A DNA stretch of 64,000 nt from Hydrolagus affinis (Eukaryota): the NCBI GenBank assembly GCA_012026655.1, contig JAAILG010000019.1:1-64000 (forward strand). Direction: 5' to 3'. The position numbers and the translations under genes are program-made. The notes under the pieces were generated by a model. That model had not been told where the DNA came from, did no database searches, and saw only the letters and a list, made by a program, of their open reading frames with translations. This document shows, in pieces, positions 2,362 through 60,352 of this stretch (position 1 is its first letter; the number at the start of each line of letters is the position of its first letter).

Positions 2362-2577
2362 TCACTGTGTTCTGAAATTAAACAACGACGGCGTGGGATA
2401 ATATCCGTCCTGCGTTTATGCCAACGCCTCCTTGATGACACAGATGCCTGCTGTTTGGATGCTGATCGCCAGTCAATGCAACTTATTATTGTGAACCTGG
2501 AGAGAAGATGGGAAGCGATTATCATGCAAGCAGTGCAATGGCAGAACAGACTGCAAAGGCAACTAGGGAAAGAAAAG
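2362..2577 (+). CDS. AKAP6: AKAP6 (mAKAP) internal exon, end of spectrin-repeat region
   Basis: tttag|TCA...AAG|gtaata, 216 nt, phase 0/0; SLCSEIKQRRRGIISVLRLCQRLLDD...MQLIIVNLERRWEAIIMQAVQWQNRLQRQLGKEK closely matches recalled vertebrate AKAP6. Confidence 0.95.
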
Positions 2578-4989
2578 GTAATAATTCACTGCATAACAAT
2601 AGAGTGTAACAAATGCACCCAAGGTTTATTTTTTTTTCCCCTCACCAATATGACTGTGATTCATATATGACCCTTGCTGCTATTGGGGGTGATTTTGTGT
2701 GTGTGCATGTGTGTGTGTGTTGGTGGGGTGGTGGGATTATACCTGGACTAAATCTTTTCCTCACCTGACAACTGCATACATTAACCGACCTTCCAGCAGT
2801 GGTCACTGGACAACATTTGGTACCTGAGGTCCTGGCCAATTTTCCACTTATTGAAGCCAGTTGTAGATGTGAATTATTTTTAAAGTCATGCTTCTAGTTC
2901 TGCTTTAATAATCAAAGTTAAATGGCAAGCTTACATGTTCAATATAAATTCTAAAATAAATAGTCATTGAAATAAATTAAAATAGGAATAAGAAGAAATT
3001 ATAAATTTTTATTGTTAAAAAATGCCTTCCAGCCTTCTTTCCCCCATGAGATCAGGTTTACTGTCTGAAATTCTCCTCATAGAAGAGCTCTGAGATGTCA
3101 CCAAACCCAATTTCTCCATTCAGAGCAGTTTTCAGGAACTTGCATTTCATTTATACCATCCACACCTGCTGCCAAATGATTAACTTGGTGGTACAGCACA
3201 ACCTGTCAATTCCTCCAAACAGATGGGTCATTAAGGCCTTCTACCCGCTTAATACATTCCAGTGGTTTTACTAGTTTCTGTGTAGGCTGTTGGGTCAGAT
3301 GCCAAAAAGCATTATGCTCTCTTCAGACCCCGAGGATATCTTTAAGGGTCTTTTCAAGGGCATTGCTACTTGTCCACGTTACCAGACCCCATTGTCTTTC
3401 TTTTCATACATGAAAACATTCACCATTACTGAAGAGGGAGAACAGCCAGAAGAGTTTCCAGCAGTATCATCAAAAAATCAATACAGTTATTTGCAGTACA
3501 ATGTTTTTTGTTGTGAATTGCATTATCATCTGTGTTTTTGACAAACAAATACAAAATAAGTTTTTGGAACACACATTCTTTTGTTCAGACATCTTTAAAA
3601 GATGTAACCAGCATACTCAGACATTTTTTTTGAAAAGACTCTAGAGTTTAGATCCAGGTTTATTTTTTTGTGTTTGAAAGTACCTGTGTACAAACTCACC
3701 AATGTGAAATCATATCTGTGATCTCAACTTTACCCAGCGGAAATTTTGATGGTGCTGAATAGCCTATCACCACAATTAGAGACAATACGTTTTTTCTAAG
3801 CTATTGCTGTCTAAAGGGACTTATTTGATGTACATATTCATTTCAATTTAACTTTTTTTTCAAAGGACAAATATGTGGATGTTTGATGATAACTTCAGAC
3901 AAACAACATTACAAATAATATCACTGCTTTAATTTGTTTTGCTGCAGGTTTATTTAAACAATTAATCTCTAAACACTTCAAACTTCTAACATCTGATAGC
4001 ACATATATAGGTGTGCAAAATAATTATTACAGTATTATTTCTCATATTTTCTTACTGTAATCTATTCCTTTGCTCTTTAAAACATACTACTTATGTAAAT
4101 AGCTGCAGTAGTTACATTATTTATTGCTTGTTTCACACAGAATGCAAGGTCAGCAGGAACATCGTAGAAAAAAAGTAATGTTTTATTTGATTAAACTGAT
4201 TGATTGAACTAACAGTTGTGCCTTTTATCATGCAGTAACAAACCAAGTTAGTCATTACTGTTTCCTTTATCAGCATGCAAATAATAAAACTCAATCTAAT
4301 AAAAATTCATTAAGGTAGATGTAGAACATACCTAAGCAATTGTTAAATTCTCTATTATCTCAGATTTACAGTCTTCGCATGGTCATGAGTAGACCTTTTT
4401 GCTGTGAATAAACTGAAAAATCAAATAAACCATTTAACTACTTCCCTAACCATTCTTTCCGAAATACTAGAATTTTGTTGTATTTTCCAAATTAAAATAA
4501 GTTGCTTATTGATATTAATCCTGAATGTTAACTTGGTCCCAGGCCCCATACTTATTTTATTATAAACTCATATTGTATTGCATAACAAAATAATGTTATT
4601 CTGTGTTTCAATTTATTCAACTATCTTTTTTTCCAACAATTTCATACATTAAGTGAGTCAGTCAGGATTGCAGAGATGTTTGATTCTCTTTGAGTATACA
4701 TTGGGATTGAAATATTTCTGTTATTAATTGGTCATTCAATATTTTTTATTAATACTTCCCTCCAGTCACCCCCAAACCACTGATGCATTGTTGTGTTGTA
4801 GTTTCACAAGTGCTGAGTATTCTCTCATACCTCACCAATTAAGCAGCAAACAGTCATGGATTGAGTGATCAAATTCTTCTTATTTAAAAAAATTATTTAT
4901 TGTTTTGAAGGGATTTTTATTCCTGGAAAAGTGATCCACCAATCGCCTAATAATCAGGTCCTACTTACTGCTAGGTAAACAGAGGCATA

Positions 4990-5137: not shown

Positions 5138-8100
5138 ATCTCTTTAAGCTGCATTGAACCAGGTTCAATGGATTTAAACATCTTTGGTGAAGATTCATTG
5201 GAATGGGATGAGACTGACATGAGTAATAACCTAATTGGTATCCAAGATGAGCTACCTGACCTTGCATGTGAACAAAATAGCACACCACAATTATCACCTG
5301 AACCTTTGGAAAGTATTGCTGATGAATTCATGCTCGATCGATATAGCAGTGGCCCTGGTGAATCACTGTATAGTCCTGGTGAAGCTCCTTTCTCGTCAGG
5401 TGCACACTTCTATCAAACCTACAATCTGCAGAATGTACAGTTCTATGGAAGAGATCGGATGACATGTTTCAAAAATATCCCAGAACTTCCCACCTCAAAG
5501 TATCCAAACAGTTTAGTCAGGAGTAAAAGTAAAGATTCATCATTCTCATCCACCGACTCGTTACCAGATCTATTAGGGGACTTGACACCAGTCAAAGAAG
5601 ACATACCAACATCACAAGGGCCTTCTGAGAGTGAGAGTGGAATTGTCAGTGAGGGTGATACAGAAACTACAACAAACTCTGAAACCTCTCTTCCAAATCA
5701 AGTTGATGAATCTCAGATTCACAGCACTCCTAAACCTCTGCACCCACTGATAGAGTTAAAACATAAGGATTGTCTGATTAGATCGTGCATTTGTAAAAGA
5801 CAGGGTTCTGTCGAAAAAAAGGAAGGAATGAATTCAACAATAAAACAAAGAACAAAGAATGAAGTTGAATCAACAAAAAATCTTCAGTCACTGTCTATGA
5901 GTAATGAAGGAAATTTACAGCCCCTTGATATTAATAAAATCACTCCAAAGGGTATTTCAAATGATCTAGAGGCACAATATGATGTATTTACATTTTATGA
6001 CTATTCTTATCTGCAGGGCCCTGAGCTTGAGTTAACTATGACTATAACTCACTCACCTGAAGAAAAAGCTACAGATGGCAGTATGTCCTCCAAGCCACAT
6101 TCTGCTGAATATATTTGTAAAAATAAACTAACAGCTCCAGAATCTAAACCAGACTGTAGCAAACCAGAAAGGAGTGCACCAGCGGTATCGGTAGGCAATC
6201 CTAAAACCTATTATAGTAAAGTACCTGATGTCAGAGTATCTCTAGATGTTACAAATGATAAAGAATTTACATTTTTGTCTCAGGGGTCATCAGTGGAATC
6301 ATTCTCCATTGCTGGTGATATATTCCAACTTGGACCCAGCAGCTATAAAAATGAATGTCTTCAACGCAGTGCTTCCTTAGAGAGCTGGACCATTCCATAC
6401 AAAGGCACAGAAGAGTTATTCAGTCATCATGGGTCAGGAGACATCAGTATGGGTAGTGATTCCGTAGGGGAGCTAAGTAAGAGGACATTAGATCTTTTGA
6501 AACGATTAGAAAACATCCAAACTCCAGTAAGTCCGAAAATGAAACGCAGCATTTCTGACATCACACTGCAGAGTAACTCCCAAAAAATGTCGTTCACTGG
6601 CCAGCTGTCACTTGATGCTGCATCATCTGTCAATGAAGATTCTGCTGCTTCCCTGACAGAACTAAGCAGCAGTGAGGAGCTCTCTTTGTGTTCTGAAGAC
6701 ATAGTTGTTCATAAAAATGAAATTTTAGATTCCAATGCATTGTTCAAAAAACATACCAATCACTCAGTGACTGACGAAGCTGATGTCAATATAAGTATGA
6801 TTGTCAACGTGTCCTGTACTTCTGCTTGTACAGATGAAGAAGATGATAGTGATTTGCTTTCCAGTTCAACCCTTACGCTAACTGAAGAAGAACTGCACAT
6901 CAAAGATGATGATGACTCCAGCATTGCCACAGATGATGAGATTACTGAAGAAAGTAATAACATTTTAGACGGAAACTATATGAAAAGTGAATTTCATCAG
7001 TGGCTTAAACCAAACTTTTCTGTCACAAAGGAAAAGAAAAAATTGGATCCAGGTGAAAGAGTTCAGTGCAGGAAAGAGTCAAGTACTGGGTTATCCACTC
7101 TCAAACATATTTCGAGTCTTTATCCATTTTTAAACAATTCTGGACTGATGCTGCCAGAGTGTAAAGAAAAGGCAAAGAGCACCTCACTCTGTCACAGAGA
7201 GAGACATTTTAAACAAACCAGTATGGCCCCTGTGAAACATTTCTGTACTGACAATTTAAGTGATGATGTAGAGAATGGCAATGTGGCAAAATGTCCACTA
7301 AAGAGCAAGAAAGAACTAAGAGTTTTAGACAGCAAAAGATTTTATGAAAAGGAAGAATATACTAGCAAGACCCACAATACAAAATGCTCGAAATTTGAAT
7401 TCTCTAGTCGACCAGGGCAACAAAAAAAAGATATTTCTAACACCTCGTACATTCCAGCCCAGTTTCCCACACAATCTCCACAAAGGAATGAATGTCATGC
7501 ATGTTTTGAAGACAACGGGAGTGTGAAGCAAGTTTTACCTTTGCTTGCTTTTGATTCTGATGATGAGATGATTTTCTCAGGGAAGCCTCTAAAATATGAT
7601 GTTGGTGTGTTAGATGAGAAAATAGCTCCAACATGTGAAAATAAGCGAAAATGCCAACATCACAACACTAGTGCAGAATTACTGTATAATTGCCAAGGTG
7701 ATGAATATATTACCAATGAGGTTTCAGCTGAAAAATCTGATGCTATTTTGTGCTCATCTCATCATAAATGTGAAAATAAACAGTTGGAAGAAGCTAACAA
7801 AGATGATACAAACATGTTTTCAAGTTGTATCTGCCATTCTGATATGCCTCAGACTATCGATGGCGAAGAAGACAGTTCAGTTCACAACTTTGTGATGGAG
7901 ATAATTGATATGGCATCATCAGCACTGAAAAACATCTCACAGCATGACTCTGACATCACCAGCCCAACATCAGTGGCTCAGATTAAGGAAAAAGTGTTAG
8001 AACATTCTCACCGACCTTTGCAGCTACGAAAAGGGGACTTTTATTCTTATTTGTCCATCTCATCACATGACAGTGACTGTGGTGAGGTGAACACTTGTAT

Positions 8101-8899
8101 AGATGAGAAAAGCACCACTCCACTTCCTTTGGATTTCAGTGATGAGTTCAGACCAGATAACAATGCTGAGGACGGAGCCTTTCTTGATGAAGATTTTGAA
8201 GAAAAATTTTCTGATCATCCCTGTGTATTTAGTTTTGCACTTCAAAAAGAGGCAGTTTTAGATAGAACACCATATTCTTTGACCCAACCCGTATCATTTT
8301 CTGACAGGAAAACATTGTCACTGCCAAATGACAGACTGGAAGTAATAGTGCCAAAAGTTATTCATGCAACACCAAATGATCAGAAGATATTGTGTGAAGG
8401 AAATCTAATTAAAACAAACAAAATTAGTCGTAACATAAAAACACTTTTAGGCCTCACTGGTCAAGTAGATCATAAATCTGAAGACAGTATTGTTCCCTCT
8501 CTAGAGTGCCATATTGAGGCTCCATACATAAATCCTTTGCTGCTTGAAAATCAGATGGACAATACTGAGTGTTCATCAGATGATGAATCAATTTTTTCTA
8601 CATGTAAAATTGAAATGCCTGAACCCAACTATAGTCAATCAAATATTGAAGAAACTGAAAACCGTAAGTCAGTGAAACAGCCTCACGAAATGAGAAGTAA
8701 TCTCGTGAAGGACACACAACTAAATGATAGTCATTTTGAAAAAACTGGAGACAATCTGTTTATTAGCACTAAAATCCAATTCCCACAACATGGATATCCT
8801 GAGTATGAAAATTGCGAAGATATGGAATGTGAAATGGAAGACACGCTTTACAAGAAAGAGAAAAATGGCGATTGTGGGTTTGACTTGTCTCAAGAAGAG
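5138..8899 (+). CDS. AKAP6: AKAP6 giant exon (1254 codons): LEWD motif, Ser/acid-rich conserved block, PKA-RII amphipathic helix
   Basis: tttatag|ATC acceptor in frame with ORF 5168..8920; GAG|gtaagt donor after 8899; AKAP6 hallmarks SESESGIVSEGDTE, ELSKRTLDLLKRLENIQ, HNFVMEIIDMASSALK, IKEKVLEHSHRPLQLRKGDFYSYLS. Confidence 0.95.
5198..5209 (+). other. AKAP6: LEWD W-acidic motif (kinesin light-chain-binding type, as in nesprins)
   Basis: ttg gaa tgg gat within EDSLEWDETD. Confidence 0.7.
7880..7933 (+). other. AKAP6: PKA RII-binding amphipathic helix
   Basis: VHNFVMEIIDMASSALKN vs recalled human HNFVKEIIDMASTALKS. Confidence 0.85.
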
Positions 8900-9768
8900 G
8901 TAAGTTATATGATCCATTAGATCCACCATTCAGAAATTGTTATATACTAATTCTCTATTGTGCATCTGTCTTTGCCATAACTAAAATGGAAACAGAAGAA
9001 TTAAAATAGTTATTTTAAATTGGAACCACATCGAAACTTAAATTGGAGAGTGCCTCAAATTAGTCTTTTTCAAACAATGTATTTATTCTCAGTTGTAATT
9101 GTTATAGAATATGAAATGGGATAATATTAATATCTGATGATCTAATGCAAGTCATTTATTCTAAATACCATTTAGTTAAGTATTGCTTTGAAACACAAGC
9201 ATGTTTTGTTTGTCTAAGCAGAATGAATGATTGAATGAAGTTAGCATTTTAATCCCATATTTCATATAAAGACATAGATAGCATGAACCTTTGTAAAAAT
9301 TTAAGATGTCACTTGACAGTTCCTATCTGTTTCTGTCTTTCTTGTTGTCTCTAAGAGCTGGTCATTTCTAGAATTACTCTCTTAATATTGACAAAGTGCA
9401 GATAACATAAAAGTCCACACCTACAAAACAATGACATGACTAAAACAATTCACAATGAATTTAATGGATTAAGATGCTTGACATTTTGTAGGCTATTAAA
9501 AGACTTAACATGGATTAGCAGCATTGTGTATTTAATAAAAAGATTATGGATATTCCCTGTGAATCCTATGATAGTAAGACATTCAAGAGTACGGTCAAAG
9601 AATACTGGTCATGTGTATAAAGAAGATTTACTATGATTGATGGCTTTTATGATGCTGTATAGCTTAACTAAGTGTTATTGAAACTAAGGTTGTGTTTATG
9701 TTTCATTTTTTATTTTGCTATTGGTGGAACCAGAGTAACAAATAATAATACACTTTTCTGATTTGCAG

Positions 9769-9909
9769 ATTCCTAGCTCTTCAAAATTTATAACAGGGAA
9801 ATCCAAGAAAGCTAAGAACAGCAGAACCACTGGTGATAACCTTACCGTTTGTGCTTCCCATCATAGTGAATCTCTGCATGACTCTCATGCTGCAAGATCT
9901 GTGCCCAAG
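9769..9909 (+). CDS. AKAP6: Predicted additional AKAP6 exon (47 aa, IPSSSKFITGK...AARSVPK)
   Basis: cttttctgatttgcag|ATT acceptor, open in phase 0 for 141 nt, AAG|gtatag donor (moderately weak). Confidence 0.6.
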
Positions 9910-10661
9910 GTATAGATGTGAGTTGAACAAACATTCTTTCTAAAAATGTGAATATTCAGTTGATTAAGAAATCCTGCACATTTGTCAGATGAGTTCAACA
10001 TTCTCTAAGGAATCAATGCTCTTTGGAATCAGAAAATGGCTGTATACACAGCCAATTTCACAGTTTTTTCACCATGATTGTAAAAGCCATATCTAAAATG
10101 GCAGTCTACATGGTCGGATGATTGGTTTATAATCTACCCTAGGTAAAACTACATTGTTTATATACAAATTTCCGGAATAGATAGATTAAATAACTAGTAC
10201 TGTAAAAAGATATTACTGGTGATTGGCTTTCTTTTCTGATGCAACTGCCTTAGCATCCCACAGTTTGAAGATAATATGATTTTGGGAAAGGAATGTGCAA
10301 CTCAGCACTCCCAATTCCTCCTTTCCAACAAGCTGCCTTGAAAAACAAGAATGAATTTGTATCTGGTGTAAAACAATAAGCCTTTAGTTGTTGTCACCTT
10401 GCAAAACTGCCAGTGGACAATGGAAATCTATCTCATTATGATCAGTGTGTACACTATTCTGCTTCTGTATTAAGTTTTTTAAAATATATAATTCACAAAT
10501 TCCTTATGAATAGTTGCTCTTTGAATAACTAAGCCAAAATCTATTTAATATATAGAGTAATCTTTATAAATTACTTCCTGTACCGCTTTGTTGCTTTCTG
10601 GATTCATTGCTTACAGCTCTTCTTTTACTTTTATATGTCATGTTTTTTTATATAAATGTAG

Positions 10662-10696
10662 AGGTCAGTAGCAGAAAAGCAAGATCAAAGGCAAAG
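10662..10696 (+). CDS. AKAP6: Predicted 35-nt AKAP6 microexon (RSVAEKQDQRQ+AG), phase 0 to 2
   Basis: T-rich tract, tgtag|AGG...AAAG|gtaact; purine-rich; exit phase matches the phase-2 acceptor at 11566. Confidence 0.55.
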
Positions 10697-11565
10697 GTAA
10701 CTAGCTAGATCCAGATATTTGTGCCTAATTTGGAAGGCGAATACATGCATGTCTGGAGTGCTTCCTAGAAGCTGTAGAAGAGATGTACTTTGCGTTAATC
10801 TCTTCGGCTGTATTCTGACAGTCATTTCTTCATAATCCTCATCACAAGCTCCTGCACTTTGCTGCATGGTTTAATTATCCCAGACTGACTCCTCACTGTG
10901 GAAATCAAACCCTATGGCTGGCCAGATGTTATTGCTTTCTTGCTGCCAGATATAGAAAAAACCTGAAGTTTAACATATAAATATATACAGAGTGGATATG
11001 AAATAAATTAATTTGGAAGTGCCTATAATAAATATATTTGGTCGCTACATTTAGGTCACTTACTTTATAAATAGTTTTAATAACTTCAGGTTTTTATAAT
11101 CATTTGGGGCCCAATGATTGCCGCTTTATGTATCCATTATCACTGGGCTTGCTTCAATCAATGTTGTTTTCATGTTGACATATGTAGCTGAGGGTGTTGT
11201 CTGCATATTGAAGCTCACAGATGAGGATGAATACATGAAGAAAGGTCACACATGACAGTTTACCAACTTCTCTAGTGAAGTTATTATTAAAAATTGATAA
11301 AGGCCTGAACAATAATTCAATACTATTGTAATTTATTTTTCCACACAATTTTACTGTCATTTCTTCTTTCAATATAATGTTTTGGGGCACATGCTTATAA
11401 ATAGCTCAAGTAGTTGTTTACTAGTAATCCTAGAATTCTGCTAAATAATGTAATCCTGTTTTTAAATATTTGTAATATTACCAATATAGAATGCTGACAA
11501 AGTAATGGTTTATTATTCTGTATTGTCCCTGACTACAACATGAATTTGTCTTTCTTTCCCTTCAG

Positions 11566-11845
11566 AAATCTGGCTGTATCCGTGCTCCATTTTTGTCCAC
11601 CTATTCCCAAGGTAGCCTCTAATCTTATTCAGTCATCCTCTTCCTCACTGATATCCAAGTCAAGCTCTTTCCAAATGCGAGTTTTTCATGCAGGTGTGAT
11701 AATCTGGTTGCTTCTGCTGATCCTTTGTATGGCAGTTGCTATAACTCCCTTGTTTGTAATACCATCAGATTGCAGCAAAGTTCGGCTGTTTTCTTCTTCA
11801 TGGACTCCTGTCCTAAGCTACCTCCAAGGACCCCCTCCATTCTGA
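11566..11845 (+). CDS. AKAP6: Terminal exon encoding a KASH domain (TM + luminal PPPF tail), predicted AKAP6 C-terminus
   Basis: tctttctttcccttcag|A acceptor; FQMRVFHAGVIIWLLLLILCMAVAITPLFVIPSDCSKVRLFSSSWTPVLSYLQGPPPF-stop aligns without gaps to recalled nesprin-1 KASH. KASH identity is strong; linkage to AKAP6 is inferred from splice phase. Confidence 0.8.
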
Positions 11846-12692
11846 CTTACAGTTTATTAAATGTCCTGCTTTTTGTGGCAATAGGCATTTTTTGATATCT
11901 AAAGGAATATCATAGCATTTGCATTTACAATACCAAGGTGTAATTTTGTTTCAATTTCTGTAATGGCATTTGATATGAATGCATTTGGAATATATCAGAG
12001 TAATACTTGGAAATTATTGGGGCAATGTGTCAATTTGAAATAAAACAACTTTTATCATGCATACACATGCATATGCAAACAAAAGATATTGGCTGAGTTG
12101 TGTTAACTGTGCTTCATCTGTCAAGCGGAGCCCTGGATTTTATTGGATAATTTACCTTCAATTATTAAAATATGGCAAGTAGCATATTAGTTAAAAGAGA
12201 AATCTGAAGTTTATATTGAGTATCAATTATAATATATTGATAAACATGTAAGCAAAGTTAAAAGAAAACCAACATAGAATTCATAGATCGAATCTATGCA
12301 ATACTGAAACTTTAAAAAAAATTGAACAAATTGTTGTACATTGAAATTATAGGCATTTCATTTGGTTCAGTACCATCATTTTCTTATTTGCTCTTAAAGG
12401 GAAAAAGAAAGAAATGTTTTAACAATGTGTGCCTTGCTGTATTTCTTATACCTTTTGTTAAAAAGCTGCATTTCCCTGAAGTTGGTTTAAAGATATGATA
12501 TAGCAAGGTTAGGCTGTGTGTATAATTTCTGTACATATGTACAAGAAAATGCTAACATTGATGTATATGATATACAATGCTTTCTTGTTTTGTGTTAACT
12601 TGTCCAGTGGTGTAGAAATATTAAGCCTTAAACTGTTAGATTGCATGGGTAAATTAAAGTTGGCAAATAAAAATAATTTATCAGACAATAAA
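11846..12692 (+). terminator. AKAP6: Candidate 3' UTR with polyadenylation signals
   Basis: AATAAA at 12039-12044, 12666-12671 and 12687-12692 downstream of the KASH stop. Confidence 0.45.
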
Positions 12693-20100: not shown

Positions 20101-20654
20101 TGAAGTCAACCAAATAGAGTATTAGCACCCCCCACATATGCATACACACACATATACACACACACACAACGTAGCTCAATATTATACCTTGCCTACTTTG
20201 GGGTAGTAGAGCGGCCGATTTAAGGTTCAGTGCTTTTGAAATTCTGTATGGCAAAGGGTCCTCAAAATGAAGGAAGAGGCGAGGGAGGGAAACAACATTT
20301 TTTGCAGGTTTAATTTAAAAAAATAAAGGCTTTCTTTGCACGCGCGCTCGTCCAATAAAAATACGCCTGATTGGGCGTGATTGGGCGTAAAACAGCCCAA
20401 CTCTTCAACTCTTTCTCTGTTCTTCGCCCCCCCTCCTCCACCCTCCGCCCCATTCAAAAAAAACGTTCGGATCCCAACGGTCGAGAAAGTCGTGCGCGTG
20501 CACGTCGTGACGTATCCACACCCCCACGCGCGCGCGCACATACACACACACATACTCACACGTGAGGCGCGAGGTGGCGGAGCTGAGCATCACGATTGGC
20601 CGCCAAAGCGCCGGGCGCCAGAATTGCTATTAAGCGTCAACGAACCGGCAGCGA

Positions 20655-20689
20655 GCTGTACCTCGAGCTCGTCAGCTTCCAGTCCCAGG
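20655..20689 (+). other. NPAS3: Candidate short non-coding first exon of NPAS3
   Basis: Starts about 25-30 nt after tattaa (start approximate); strong donor AGG|gtaagt after 20689. Confidence 0.4.
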
Positions 20690-21019
20690 GTAAGTTGGGG
20701 AGGGGGGTGGGGGGGCTTCACTTTCTCCGGCCAAATTGCAGCAAGTTTGAAAACCGTCTTCCAATCCTTTTTCCTTCTTCACCGGATCGACATGTCGTTT
20801 TCCACCGTTTAAGCTGCGTAAATCACAGTTATCGAATAGACATACCTCTCTCGTTCTCTCTCTCTCCATATATATATAAAAAGAAAATAAAGGGAAGCCC
20901 ACCCTCACGGAGTGGAAGTTATCACTAATGGGATTGAAGTTTAACTTGATACTCAAGAGAAAACCGCAGTTCACTAAGACGCAACCGTGGAGCTGGCCAT
21001 TGGAAATCCTAGCGCGGGG

Positions 21020-21106
21020 ATGATCAGGATTTTCCCGGATTTCAGTGTGCAAGTAACGGCAGCAACTGGTGGAGGAGGCGCCGCGGTTACTGCTGCACCT
21101 GGAGTG
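21020..21106 (+). CDS. NPAS3: NPAS3 upstream alternative first coding exon (MIRIFPDFSVQVTAATGGGG...), truncated by the assembly gap
   Basis: Peptide matches the recalled N-terminus of long predicted vertebrate NPAS3 isoforms (MIRIFPDFSVQVTAA...); 3' end falls in the N-run. Confidence 0.7.
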
Positions 21107-21206
21107 NNNNNNNNNNNNNNNNNNNNNNNNNNNNNNNNNNNNNNNNNNNNNNNNNNNNNNNNNNNNNNNNNNNNNNNNNNNNNNNNNNNNNNNNNNNNNN
21201 NNNNNN
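21107..21206. other. Assembly gap (100 N)
   Basis: Run of 100 n. Confidence 1.
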
Positions 21207-23749
21207 CACACACACACACACCCCCCCCCTCAATATTTATAGCAATATGTGGCATCTGGTTTTCCAAACACACTTTTTTTTATTTTATATTCATTTGCGT
21301 GGCGCAATGGGTTTTGGTTGAATTGGTACCAATTGCCACATGTTACCAATGATAAGTTATGCACGAAAGTTAATTTTGAAATATTACTACCAACATGTGG
21401 CAAAAACGCGTTGAACATTCTTGCAACTTGTCTCAGCAGCTTGGGAAGAAATGTTAAATATTTGACAAAAACTCTCCTATTAATAGGGGGGGGGGGAGCT
21501 TTAAATATACCAGAATGCAGGAAGGGAAGATGATAAGCAAACATGTAGGCAGATGCGCTAAGCAAAACGCTCCTTAACTCAAGGCCCAGTTCTTATAACC
21601 CAAATAATTTTATCCGCTCCTTGTGATCCATTAGTTTTAATAAAACAGAAATCTTGATGAAACTCATTGACTGTTTATTTCTGCGTCAACTGTGCTTGCT
21701 ATAAGCAGTATCCGTGTGGTATCTGCCAAATTCGAATCTAAAGATCAAAGTTATTTATATACGTGTATTTTGGGATATGAAAAAAAATCATTTTTGCAGT
21801 GTTGCTATTTTCGGGTGGGGGGGTGGGGGGGGGGAGATGATTGCTTTTAAACGGTGCTACTTCAAATCTCTTACTAGGCAGGACTAAGCTAAATGTTTCT
21901 TTTCCTTAAACAGGTTCTTTTGAAATGCAACTGTTTCTTTGCTATGTAGTGTACAAAAGCAATGTTATACTTAAAATAACATAAACAAATTAATCAGTTT
22001 TGTAAACTAACCACGGGCAAATATGTAGCCATTAATGTATTGAAATAAAATATAAACAATGAAAGATGTAAACAATAAAACTATGTAGATAACGGTCTCA
22101 AAATATGAAATGCCTAACCAGGATAGTGGGATTTGAAGACTAATAAGTTCTTCTGCACTCAAAAGTGAGATGATTTTAGATATTTCCACGATTTGTGGAT
22201 AGAGTATTTAATATACTTTTACAAATCGAAACTATTCAACATTTTTGAGAATGGTAATTAGCACTTAGTTATGCAAGTAACAGCGGCTGCATCGTCAACA
22301 GTCATGATTAACTAAATCTAGGTTTCTAACAATTCACGTATTGCTTGTTTAAAAACAAGTTCAAATGGCAAGAGAGACAGGAACAACGATGTTATGTGGT
22401 TACGAGACCGACTGAACAAAATTAGTATCTCCACTGTAATTCTTTTAAATCAACACATTGTAGAGTACAATAATTATAACCTAGAGATTACTTTTAGGAG
22501 GAGTAAGGGCTCTAAAATAGTCTCGAGTGCCATTTCGGCAACGCATAGGAAACAATCACAATATGAATGGAAATTTTTCGCATTTTATGGAGCTAGATTA
22601 TTGTGATTTGTAACTAACGCAAACAATATGATATTTCATTACATAGTTCTCGATTTTTTTTAAATGAAGAGAAAGTTACCAAAATGAATATTAGTGCGTA
22701 TAATTGACAAATTCTTAACATTTATTGTGCAAGCATAATTTGCCCAGCAAAATATGAGGCTCTTGCGCTAGAACAAATACTTTATCGCAACGTAGTGTTG
22801 CAATGAGTACCATACCAATCCAAATAAGTTACTACACTTTTCAAATTTGGGTCCAGATGTTATGTTTCTTATATGCAATGAAAAACAATCCTGTTTTTGA
22901 ATCGAAAGAAAAATACATGACATTGTCTACTATTTTTGTATACTTTTTTTTAAAAAAGTCTAGCATTTTTCCAACTCTCAGACCAGGTATCAGCTGAATA
23001 ACCTGTTACTTCATGGCCAAGGATTTGTCATGTTTGTCTGCAATTTAGTTTTGGACATCGCCAAATGCCCATCTATGGTTTTGCAGCAATGAGTTTTAAT
23101 TAGATTGCCACATTTTGTATAATCGCACGTGATTGGAAAACTGCACTTCAAAGTACCTGTCACACTTTAAATCAAAATGAAACGTCCTCGTTTTGCGCGA
23201 GTGACTGTAACATTTAGGTGACACACTTATTGAAACACGCTTCACTTTTATTGATGGAGTTTCAAGTTGATTGCTTGCAGAATATTTTGCCAAAACATTC
23301 AAAGGAAGTTACAAAACACGGAACATCTTTAGATGAATATTTCATAAAACATGTAATTGCTACTGTGATCCGCAGGACACCATTCATCCTGTGGTATCTG
23401 GCTTGCGGATGCTTTAGTAAATCATTGACGAAAGGAAATCTAGATTTTAATAATAATCACAGCAATCATTTTGCCAGGAAATATGTTTTTAAGGAAACCC
23501 TACAATAATTACTGGGACATATGCCAGGAGGCTTGGGTGACATTTACAAACTGAATAGGGTTTACATTAGACCAAACCACACAGCATTTTCTTTCTAAAT
23601 AAGATCATTTGTGTTTTGAATGTCACCTATCTCTTTAACGTTATGCAATAAAGTCGAAGCTTTTAAATCCGGTTATTTAGATCCCATCTGTAATGTGGTA
23701 TTATATCAAATCTCAGCTATTCTTCATAAAGTGAATAAAATAACAACTG

Positions 23750-29574: not shown

Positions 29575-30655
29575 GTTACAATACAAAATTACATTTGTAT
29601 AGCGGCTTTCACATCAGGAGGGCCTCCCAAGGCACTGTACAGTCAGGGATTTGGACCTGGGTGGGAGGTTTGGGGTAAGGGCGGTGGGAGGGTGGCCAAA
29701 GGCACAGTTGGAAAGGAGGATGTTAAGATGTGCTTTGAAGGAGGTAAGGGAGGAGGGAGCGAGGAGAAGGGAATGTGGGATTAAGATGGGGAGGGCAGGC
29801 GATGTGCAGCAGGCTGGAGACTACTGTGTGGAGGGAGCAGACTGATTGATAAGGGGTTACCAGATCACAGAGGTAGGAATGGGCTGTGGAGGACCTTGAG
29901 GATTTTGAACTGTATGCTCTGAGGGATGGAGAGCCAGTGGAGTCTGGCATAGATGGGGCAGATTGGGTCACAGAGCCTGGTGCAGGAGAAAACACAAGCT
30001 TCAGAGATCTGGATGATCTGTAGCTTGTGGAGGGAAGAGTTGGGAAGGCCAATAAGCAGGGAGTTGGCATAATCAAGCCTAGATATGATGAATGAGGATT
30101 TTGGTGGCCTGAATGGGTGAGACAGTGTTGCAGAGATGGGGAAGTACAGAGTAGGTCATGGCATGGATGATGGATGCGGAGGTATTTGAGGGGTAAACAA
30201 GATGCCCAGGTTCCTGATTGGCTCAGTGAGGTGGAGTTGGCATCCATGGATCATGATGCTGCCAGTGCCTGAGGTGTGGAGGTGCTGACGAAATCCCATC
30301 AGGATGGTCTTGTTGGCGCTCAACTGAAGAAATTTAGCTCTTGTCGAAGACTTGATATCTGAAAGACATTCTGTTAGGACAGCAGTGGTCCTGGAGTTGA
30401 GGGTAGAGGCAGAGAGATAGAGTTGGGTGTCATCTGCGTACATGTGGAAGTTGACCTCATGTCTGCAGGTGATATGACCAAGTACAGAGCCCTGAGGAAT
30501 ACCGCATGAGACAGTGTGGGTGCTGGAGGGGAAATTGTTTGTGGAGACAAAGTGAAGTAGGTATGAAGGGTAAGATCTGAACCATTCAATGACAGAACCG
30601 TGAAGGTTGATGTCAGAGGAGAGGCGATGGAGGAGGATAGAGTGGTCAACTGTAC
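29575..30655 (-). mobile_element. 5'-truncated L2 LINE with reverse-transcriptase remnant
   Basis: ORF 30156..30707(-) has TVDHSILLHRL, GIPQGSVLG and MYADDTQLYLS; frameshifted; 3' tail near 29575-29640. Confidence 0.9.
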
Positions 30656-31829
30656 AAGTTAGTTTGTGACCTTGTGCTCCAAGTATAGCCGTTACACTTA
30701 ACAGCAATTACCTGCAAAACACTTTGAGATGTTTTGATGTTATTGATGCTGAATCAATTTCAAGAATTTTTAAAGTTTACAATGATGGAGGAATCTAATT
30801 GTAGGCCATTATTCCTGTAGTGTTTACAAATACTGGGAAATATGTTTAAATTTGGCACTTTTAGGGAAACGAGATGGAGCCTTGACATGTTTCTCCTATC
30901 AATCCTCATATTAACTATTGGGTAGACAGGATATAACCATAATATTTTCAAATACAAATAGATGTATAATATTGTTCTGTAATGTTACTGCAACCTTTTT
31001 AAATTGACAAAAGGTTTATATTAATGAAAATGAATATCTAATTTTAAAAAGCTGTGTTAAAGCTTTGGTGAACATCAAAGGTCTCATAATTTACAGTCCT
31101 TGATGCTCTTAGTAAAATGTGAAATGGGTGAAGCGAAAAGGTAAGGGAACAAAAATCAACACAATATTGTGGTTTAATAAACTTGAAGAAAAAGCAAGGG
31201 GCCAGGAGATCAATACTTTACCTCCAGAACTAATAATGAACTTACTATGTTTTGTTCTAAGTAACAATTATAATATTATAACATTATAATAATGTTCCAA
31301 CTCTGCTTTTTCTTAATGATGCTTTGCTTGTATATTCTCTTGGTTTACACAGATTTTTTTTTCTTTCCCCTGTGACCTTGAGCAATTCCATCTGCAGTAA
31401 TCGGAAAGAAAATAATTTATTGAATGAATGGAAGAAAGATTAGGCCTACTGAACTCAAAGTGGTTCCAATCAGTGTACATTTTTATTAACGTCAGATAGA
31501 TTTTGGGCTTCTCCTTAAAGGTGAAAGTAATTTTCCAAGTTTGGGAAAGTGAAAAAATGCTTCCTGTTGAAAGTGATCACCTCTATGTTAGGTACAAAAA
31601 TGAACATTTAGTGCAGCCTCGGGTTCCAAGTCCTAAGATGCTTGGCGCTCTGGTGGCAAATATTATGGGGAAGAGTTAGGTGCATGGTTGAGTTACTCCA
31701 TCCAGTTTGTATTGAGCTGACCTAAACTGACTTAGGAATTTAGCTGGAGTCACCCAATACATAGTGAGGACAATCATGGCAAGTACAAGTGCTATACGAT
31801 CCCGAGTTATCTCACCCAAACTATATATG

Positions 31830-59594: not shown

Positions 59595-60352
59595 TAGGTG
59601 TGTAAGACGGAAGCCATACTCTTTGGCTTCCATCGACGTCTTCTGTCCCATGGTTCCGACCTCCTCAACCTACCTGACCTGTCCTTAAAATTCTCCAAAA
59701 CTGTGCACAACTTAGGTGTCAGGTTTGATCCCCAGTTATCCTTCCCCGATATCCGGCCCATTACCAGAACCACTTTCTTCCATCTCCACCACGTTGCAAG
59801 TCTCCGGCAGTAATTCACCCCAACAGCTGCCAAAACCCTGGTCCATGCCTTTGTCACCTCTCACCCTCCTCGCTGGTCACCCCCACTCCACCATCCACAA
59901 AATTCAGCTCATACAAAACTCCACCATCTGCACTAAGCTTCTTACCCTGATTACCCCAGTCCTTGTCAAACTGCACTGGCTCCCTGTCACAGAGCAGATC
60001 GATTTCAAGATCCTCACTCTTGTATTTAAATCTTTCCGCTCCTTTGCACCCTGTTACCTCACTTAACCTCCTCTCCCCTCACTGCAGGGGCCTGCCTCTG
60101 CTCTACTGGGTCCAACCTCCTCCTTGTCTCCGGAGACCTCCCCTTCACCATCAGCAGCCGTGCTTTGAGCCACAACGCCAAGAAATTTTGGAACTCCTGC
60201 TCTCAACCCCCTCCTTTCCCATCTTCAGGTTGCGCATGAACACGTTTCTCTTCGGCCATGCTTATGGTTACCTTCCCCCTCCCACTTGCTCGGCCTCGGG
60301 CAGTTCGCTCTTCACCTGGTGTGAAGAGCTCTATATAAAGTTTTGTTGTTGA
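59595..60352 (+). mobile_element. L2 LINE 3' fragment
   Basis: KTEAILFG..VHNLGVRFDPQLSF and ITPVLVKLHWLPV..IDFKILTLVFK; tail ctctatataaagttttgttgttg. Confidence 0.88.

Follow-up and report, generated by a model that had tools for sequence, protein, structure and literature searches.

A KASH-encoding last exon in the AKAP6 gene of the chimaera Hydrolagus affinis: does the scaffold have its own nuclear-envelope anchor?

Introduction

Does the protein kinase A (PKA) scaffold AKAP6 carry, in some vertebrates, its own anchor to the nuclear envelope? The question is raised by the 3′ end of the AKAP6 gene in 64,000 nt of DNA from the chimaera Hydrolagus affinis (assembly GCA_012026655.1, contig JAAILG010000019.1, positions 1 to 64,000 of the forward strand; this whole stretch is called the window), where a last exon encoding a KASH tail lies downstream of the giant exon of the gene. 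Parts of three sources describe AKAP6 as held at the outer nuclear membrane by another protein, nesprin-1alpha (PMC13632692, a 2026 review; PMC8523159, eLife 2021; PMC4284225, a 2015 review on linker of nucleoskeleton and cytoskeleton, or LINC, complexes). We consider it very likely that a KASH-ended isoform of AKAP6 is real, and this isoform is probably old. The exon was pointed out in a preliminary description of the DNA, whose proposals of a true KASH tail and of an exon chain joining it to AKAP6 are supported here by the sequence and by public gene models, and which needs two corrections: KASH is not the sole end of the protein, and databases already contain KASH-bearing AKAP6.

In the mechanism that we propose, one splice form would run from the giant exon through a 141-nt exon and a 35-nt microexon into the last exon, which encodes a linker rich in Ser, a single transmembrane helix and a luminal KASH peptide of 30 residues that finishes in PPPF. 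The resulting isoform would be tail-anchored in the endoplasmic reticulum and the outer nuclear membrane, where its luminal peptide would bind SUN-domain trimers in the manner of nesprin-1/2, holding the isoform at the nuclear envelope. The PKA scaffold would thus itself belong to the LINC complex. When the microexon is skipped, a soluble 18-residue tail would be made instead, and read-through at 9909 or 8899 would produce further KASH-less ends. From the sequence we infer that the KASH isoform is expressed in H. affinis and that it binds SUN proteins.

The last exon encodes a KASH tail

The terminal coding exon occupies positions 11566..11845 (like all the AKAP6 features given below, on the plus strand) and holds 92 codons in the KASH frame, counted from 11567. 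It had been proposed that this exon encodes a KASH tail, and a Pfam scan of the exon peptide agreed: PF10541 was matched (E 4.3e-10; score 40.2 bits, cut-off 23) by residues 37-92 of 92, encoded at 11675..11842. The match spans profile positions 3-58 of 58, finishing on the last residue. A transmembrane helix is predicted at about 11696-11752, where the most hydrophobic 19-residue window, VIIWLLLLILCMAVAITPL, has a mean Kyte-Doolittle value of 2.84. After the helix comes a luminal peptide of 30 residues, and the stop codon directly follows PPPF.

The alignment to nesprin KASH had been described as gap-free, and this was also found here, as an ungapped comparison from the C-terminus gave 20-23 identical residues of 58 with three nesprin-like proteins (a label assigned in this analysis, given that the protein library holds no names). 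In a PDB sequence search, the only matches with E<1 were KASH peptides of nesprin-2 and nesprin-1 (4dxs_B, E 0.26; 6r15_B, 0.61; 4dxr_B, 0.87), and the tail lines up with their sequences in 4dxs, 4dxr and 6r15 at the Cys, at the aromatic residue and at P, L, Y and GPPP; with E up to 10, peptides of KASH3-6 were not matched.

The SUN-contact residues of the KASH1/2 class are present in the tail. Counted back from the last residue, they are Tyr -7, Pro -11 and Cys -23, the latter being the label under which the nesprin cysteine is known. With these residues and PPPF, the window tail belongs, by sequence, to the KASH1/2 class. In the excerpts of Cruz et al. (bioRxiv 10.1101/2020.06.19.161265) on which we draw, SUN binding requires PPPX, the register is set by Tyr -7 as an anchor, and those peptides that have Pro -11 (KASH1/2) turn toward SUN2 Cys563, with which a disulfide is formed. 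By contrast, the same excerpts report that KASH3-5, which are without Pro -11, bind SUN2 in another mode, so that the Pro -11 of the AKAP6 tail sets it apart from them. It is because of Pro -11, Tyr -7, the terminal PPPX and the Cys aligned with that of nesprins that binding to SUN trimers would be expected.

A proposed exon chain joining the tail to AKAP6

The body of the protein is that of AKAP6. The giant exon (5138..8899, containing the open reading frame (ORF) 5168-8920) gave 271 matches in a protein search, and of the 120 listed, most of those that bear a name are called AKAP6. This search reached proteins of up to 2177 residues only, and for that reason it missed the full-length models of cartilaginous fishes. 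With AKAP6 of Callorhinchus milii, which by these comparisons is the closest relative with a protein on record, the giant exon shares 91.8% over 1246 residues (91.7% over 1257 residues by tblastn), so that its source is a holocephalan related to C. milii yet distinct from it. Its identity to a primate AKAP6 (P0226) is 46% over 736 residues, rising to 68% over a C-terminal block of 109 residues. In fact, the most conserved block, of about 90-110 residues and including FVMEIIDMASSALKN, retains 62.6% identity in lamprey, 68% in primate and 64% in a cyprinid, and we take it to hold the putative amphipathic helix for binding of PKA RII. The giant exon yielded no Pfam family of its own in a Pfam scan. 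Upstream, an exon of the spectrin-repeat part was located at 2368..2655 by tblastn with residues 1195-1293 of the C. milii protein (P0141; 76.8%, E 3.7e-42).

Orthology to a SYNE gene was not what we found, as the named homologues of the giant exon are mostly AKAP6 and the KASH tail shares 20-23 of 58 residues with nesprin-like tails. Spectrin and KASH domains occur together in one model, P0144, with 30.8 bits for Pfam Spectrin (cut-off 29.9), and Spectrin falls below this cut-off in P0141 (24.3) and P0243 (26.6). The protein would be nesprin-like in its working, and by sequence comparison it is AKAP6 by descent, not a SYNE orthologue.

The exons of the window were translated and compared one at a time, as was every comparison reported here. 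The giant exon, located with P0141 by tblastn, ends at the donor GAG|gtaagt. It is followed by the penultimate-but-one coding exon at 9769..9909 (141 nt, 47 codons; 79.6% to P0141 by tblastn, E 1.6e-19), with its acceptor AG at 9767-9768, the donor AAG|gtatag and phase 0 at both ends. Exon-by-exon translation confirmed that both of these exons finish on whole codons. The 35-nt microexon at 10662..10696, recognised by its AG/GT flanks and its phase, has its acceptor AG at 10660-10661 and the donor AAG|gtaact, and encodes RSVAEKQDQRQ plus two spare bases. These two bases form an Arg codon with base 11566 of the last exon, whose acceptor AG (11564-11565) stands behind a long pyrimidine tract; the frame then continues as NLAVSVLHF...FQMRVFHAGVIIWLLLL...CSKVRLFSSSWTPVLSYLQGPPPF to the stop codon TGA at 11843-11845, with the C-terminus SYLQGPPPF. 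The last exon matches P0141 with 95.7% over 93 residues by tblastn (E 3.4e-49). About 195 nt past the stop, at 12039..12044, a pattern scan found an AATAAA, a candidate polyadenylation signal that is a motif match only.

Thus, the GT-AG path 8899|9769-9909|10662-10696|11566 that had been put forward agrees with the sequence in all its coordinates, and its phases are consistent. Judged by the encoded peptides, it is the exact chain of the RefSeq AKAP6 models in C. milii and eight other cartilaginous fishes. An acceptor at 11612 had been offered as an alternative for the last exon. The AG exists (11610-11611), and a join from 9909 to 11612 would leave the KASH frame intact with the microexon omitted (...SVPK followed by VASNLIQ...), but none of the 15 KASH-ending models described below uses it. 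Sampling of sequence words in sequencing runs returned four possible RNA contig sets with 5-10% of the words, one DNA set with 0.67, and three single-cell RNA runs.

A predicted microexon switch between alternative ends

When the microexon is included, the last exon is read in the KASH frame; when it is skipped, the frame shifts and the product ends in the 18-residue, KASH-less tail KSGCIRAPFLSTYSQGSL, followed by a stop (11566..11622, by translation). As skipping the microexon causes the same exon to be read in frame 0, two reading frames are used for coding over its first 57 nt, one giving the KASH linker NLAVSVLHFCPPIPKVASN... and the other the short tail, and both readings are conserved in shark models. 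Additionally, read-through of the donor at 9909 adds Val and a stop (GTA TAG, 9910-9915), producing an end in '...SVPKV' without KASH, and read-through of the donor at 8899 adds VSYMIH before a stop at 8918-8920. Consequently, the idea that KASH is the sole end of AKAP6 has to give way: it ends one of at least three isoforms, with a 35-nt exon as the switch. As ends with and without KASH are available, the gene can make both anchored and unanchored scaffolds. We also considered whether the ends of teleost (...PVCKP) and coelacanth (...LPSKP) proteins are homologous to ...SVPK(V), and rejected this, as the resemblance is too weak for such a claim from protein sequence.

The same ends are found in other cartilaginous fishes. 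A total of 15 RefSeq models named 'A-kinase anchor protein 6' end in KASH, and they represent 9 of the 23 cartilaginous-fish species surveyed (C. milii, Heterodontus, Heptranchias, Carcharodon, Cetorhinus, Mustelus, Scyliorhinus canicula, S. torazame and Hemitrygon akajei). In C. milii (XP_007891570.1, that is, P0141), for instance, the C-terminus runs ...NLSQEE / IPTSSKF...ARSVPK / RSVAAKQDQRQ / RNLAVSLLHF...GPPPF, and the near-identical 12-residue microexon stretch RSV..KQDQ.QR is present in all 15 models. Pfam KASH scores in homologues are 33.4 bits in C. milii, 34.3 in Carcharodon, 23.1 in Hemitrygon and 29.9 in lamprey (cut-off 23). Across a survey of 76 cartilaginous-fish sequences, including listed cluster members, KASH is the C-terminal form in 15, a short KSG...QGSL/QGNI tail in 34 and ...PKV in 16, the other 11 being other ends or fragments.

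How old is the tail?

The exon peptide was compared with 1.84 billion representative proteins, and seven matches with E ≤0.001 were obtained. The best of them (E 3.4e-07) is a lamprey protein of 1600 residues, isoform X1 of Lampetra fluviatilis LOC144943219, annotated as 'uncharacterized protein', and the alignment reaches its last residues; the other six resemble nesprin-type tails, again by our own labelling. The lamprey protein is collinear with C. milii AKAP6, to which it aligns in the spectrin region (32.5% over 283 residues, E 2e-38), in a block of the C-terminal half (62.6% over 91 residues, E 2.6e-31) and in KASH (50% over 58 residues, E 5.9e-12). In its AKAP6-like cluster, two of the five isoforms end in KASH and the other three end otherwise. 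As a separate observation, the tail of two lamprey proteins (P0129 and P0131) resembles a frame-shifted reading of the region that precedes KASH in P0121. The C-termini of P0121 and P0128-P0131 hint at a frame-switch mechanism, either independent or shared.

That the tail is possibly ancestral had been suggested in the preliminary description, and this suggestion gains support from the lamprey gene. That sharks, one ray and a lamprey have this architecture in common points to a KASH-ended AKAP6 older than the divergence of jawless from jawed vertebrates. Alternatively, KASH could have been gained independently in cartilaginous fishes and lampreys, or shuffled in from a nesprin gene, and would then not be ancestral. 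The lamprey and window KASH sequences share only 14 of 58 residues ungapped, a one-residue gap being needed to align them, and the lamprey tail ends in PTPV rather than PPPX, both of which would fit such a gain, as would the count of KASH in 0 of 213 other AKAP6 proteins, mostly from bony vertebrates. However, the lamprey tail was the closest to the window exon in the whole-library scan, ahead of all nesprin-like matches; the two have in common a luminal core, FSSSW.PVL.Y..GP.P, that differs from the nesprin-like core; and collinearity with AKAP6 extends along the length of the lamprey gene. We therefore regard an independent gain as unlikely.

The 213 proteins, from coelacanth, ray-finned fishes, reptiles, birds and mammals, were annotated proteins, many of them fragments, and none matched a small hidden Markov model built from KASH tails. 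Likewise, no PPPx C-terminus occurs in the 120 listed matches of the giant exon. We infer from these annotated proteins that the KASH exon was lost in bony vertebrates. We lean, if only somewhat, to a history in which AKAP6 was at first a KASH protein of nesprin type, forming a seventh KASH family of vertebrates that placed PKA signalling directly on the LINC complex, and in which the conserved microexon chose between anchored and soluble forms. Bony vertebrates would then have lost the exon and kept the targeting through binding of the spectrin repeats to nesprin-1alpha.

Points against a KASH-ended AKAP6 and further alternatives

Several observations weigh against a KASH-ended AKAP6 that is both real and old. 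The PDB matches of the tail are weak (E 0.26-0.87), because KASH peptides are short. No cartilaginous-fish representative was among the seven matches to the exon peptide; the models of these fishes probably sit in 50% clusters whose representative is tail-less. Among the cluster members fetched, a KASH-ending model is absent in 14 of the 23 cartilaginous-fish species, namely all five orectolobiform sharks, Pristiophorus and eight of nine batoids. Even in C. milii, the UniProt entries A0A4W3GP00 and A0A4W3GRR5 finish in ...SVPKV without KASH. Hemitrygon (P0144 and P0282) is the only batoid with KASH, and its score of 23.1 bits barely exceeds the cut-off of 23; its tail has an Arg in the transmembrane helix and luminal changes that include SSLWILVL for SSSWTPVL. 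The constraint on KASH may be relaxed in rays and skates. Furthermore, RefSeq models are predictions. As the NCBI pipeline can take the proteins of related species as evidence, the models of the nine species do not prove splicing in full independence of one another; the conservation of the sequence is, by contrast, independent.

A further point of this kind concerns the Chiloscyllium punctatum protein P0001. When its residues 2020-2075, a stretch that includes the linker before KASH, were used as the query, only the query was matched among 15 candidates, a blank that is due to word sharing and not to absence; homologous stretches exist in P0134, P0136 and P0141. We rejected P0001, a 2018-era model, as evidence of a different true C-terminus, as more recent models from this species have the short tail or PKV at their end. 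P0001 reads into the last exon in the KASH frame and departs from the exon right after ...FQMRVLQA at an apparent cryptic donor. In orectolobiforms, the KASH part may have decayed or may be unused. At the position of the window that matches this exit, about 11690-11699, the sequence is CAG|GTGTGA, which is donor-like.

It could be argued from such counts that the KASH frame is an untranslated relic, that only the frame-0 short tail is made and that the remainder of the exon owes its conservation to a role as 3′ untranslated region. In fact, the short tail is the commonest form in the survey (34 of the 76 sequences against 15 with KASH), and a KASH model is lacking in the 14 species named above. 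Conservation speaks otherwise. Counting identities to the window ungapped from the C-terminus over the last 58 residues, the tail of C. milii has 57, those of seven shark species 50-52 and that of Hemitrygon 44, and the window, C. milii and shark tails are free of stops and frameshifts. The giant exon is 65.5% identical in Heterodontus, 63.4% in Carcharodon and 55.9% in Hemitrygon, so that conservation is much stronger in the KASH tail than elsewhere, its chimaera-shark identity of 86-90% lying above that of the coding giant exon. The lineages compared split about 400 million years ago. All 92 codons are kept open in the window and nine species and the changes are mostly conservative (V/I, L/F, S/T), which argues that the frame is not an untranslated relic. 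Additionally, Pfam KASH stands above its cut-off in distant lineages, and the lineages concerned split hundreds of millions of years ago. Consequently, we hold the relic to be most improbable.

An equally poor candidate is a KASH exon expressed mainly as its own transcript, from a promoter in the last intron, which would yield a small KASH-only protein and make the AKAP6-KASH joins prediction artefacts: although the ORF 11540-11845, which covers the KASH frame, has its own ATG at 11540, this ATG falls within the pyrimidine tract that precedes a strong acceptor, the 35-nt exon is without any purpose other than setting the KASH frame and is kept in all 15 KASH-ending models, which range from chimaera to ray, and the lamprey models likewise join AKAP6-like sequence to KASH.

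Other features of the window

At 29723-30707 on the minus strand, a pair of overlapping ORFs (174 and 183 residues) includes a reverse-transcriptase-like motif (...MYADDTQLY...), and this region is probably a decayed fragment of a long interspersed nuclear element. The region 20200-21600, around an assembly gap of 100 N at 21107-21206, is G-rich and has many short overlapping ORFs on both strands. Finally, two overlapping Ser/Pro/Leu-rich ORFs of 116 and 129 residues on the plus strand, at 59716-60352, have a repeat-derived appearance.

Comparison with known KASH proteins and significance

The known proteins that the tail form of AKAP6 most resembles are nesprin-1 and nesprin-2 (SYNE1/SYNE2), especially the short isoform of muscle, nesprin-1alpha, which also combine spectrin repeats, a Ser-rich linker, a single transmembrane helix and about 30 luminal residues. 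They share with it the aligned Cys, Pro -11, Tyr -7 and the terminal PPPX. By contrast, the protein body is here that of AKAP6, the KASH sequence has only 20-23 of 58 residues in common with nesprin-like tails, the luminal core (FSSSWTPVLSY) differs from that of nesprins, and the switch is a frame-shifting microexon of 35 nt. Nesprins make KASH-less forms by alternative splicing. Two sources mention nesprins without KASH (PMC4284225; bioRxiv 10.1101/2020.06.19.161265). Mammalian AKAP6 (mAKAP alpha/beta) has the homologous giant exon and the spectrin-repeat region in common with the gene described here, but the mammalian, bird and reptile proteins compared finish in ...NMHR or similar and have no KASH.

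KASH5 (CCDC155) and KASH6 (LRMP) provide earlier examples of KASH tails borne by proteins other than the classical nesprins, and the human KASH proteins number six according to the excerpts of Cruz et al. (bioRxiv 10.1101/2020.06.19.161265). The preliminary description knew of no described KASH-bearing vertebrate AKAP6. For the literature this holds, as our full-text searches, which do not extend to supplementary files, found no paper describing a KASH domain in AKAP6; for databases it does not, as public RefSeq models carry KASH and the precomputed Pfam column lists PF10541 for three of them, from Heterodontus francisci (P0134), Heptranchias perlo (P0136) and C. milii (P0141). A KASH-ended AKAP6 is therefore new to the literature searched and already present in public RefSeq models with an automatic Pfam match. 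The weight of the finding is tempered by the years during which these gene models have been public and by a function that is deduced from sequence.

If the KASH-ended isoform of chimaeras, sharks and lampreys is what it appears to be, it would be a further KASH protein, with a kinase/phosphatase scaffold and not a cytoskeletal linker as its cytoplasmic part. It would also explain why AKAP6 has spectrin repeats and is located at the nuclear envelope. Furthermore, it would offer a natural experiment, in which one scaffold exists with and without its own anchor, as set by a single microexon.

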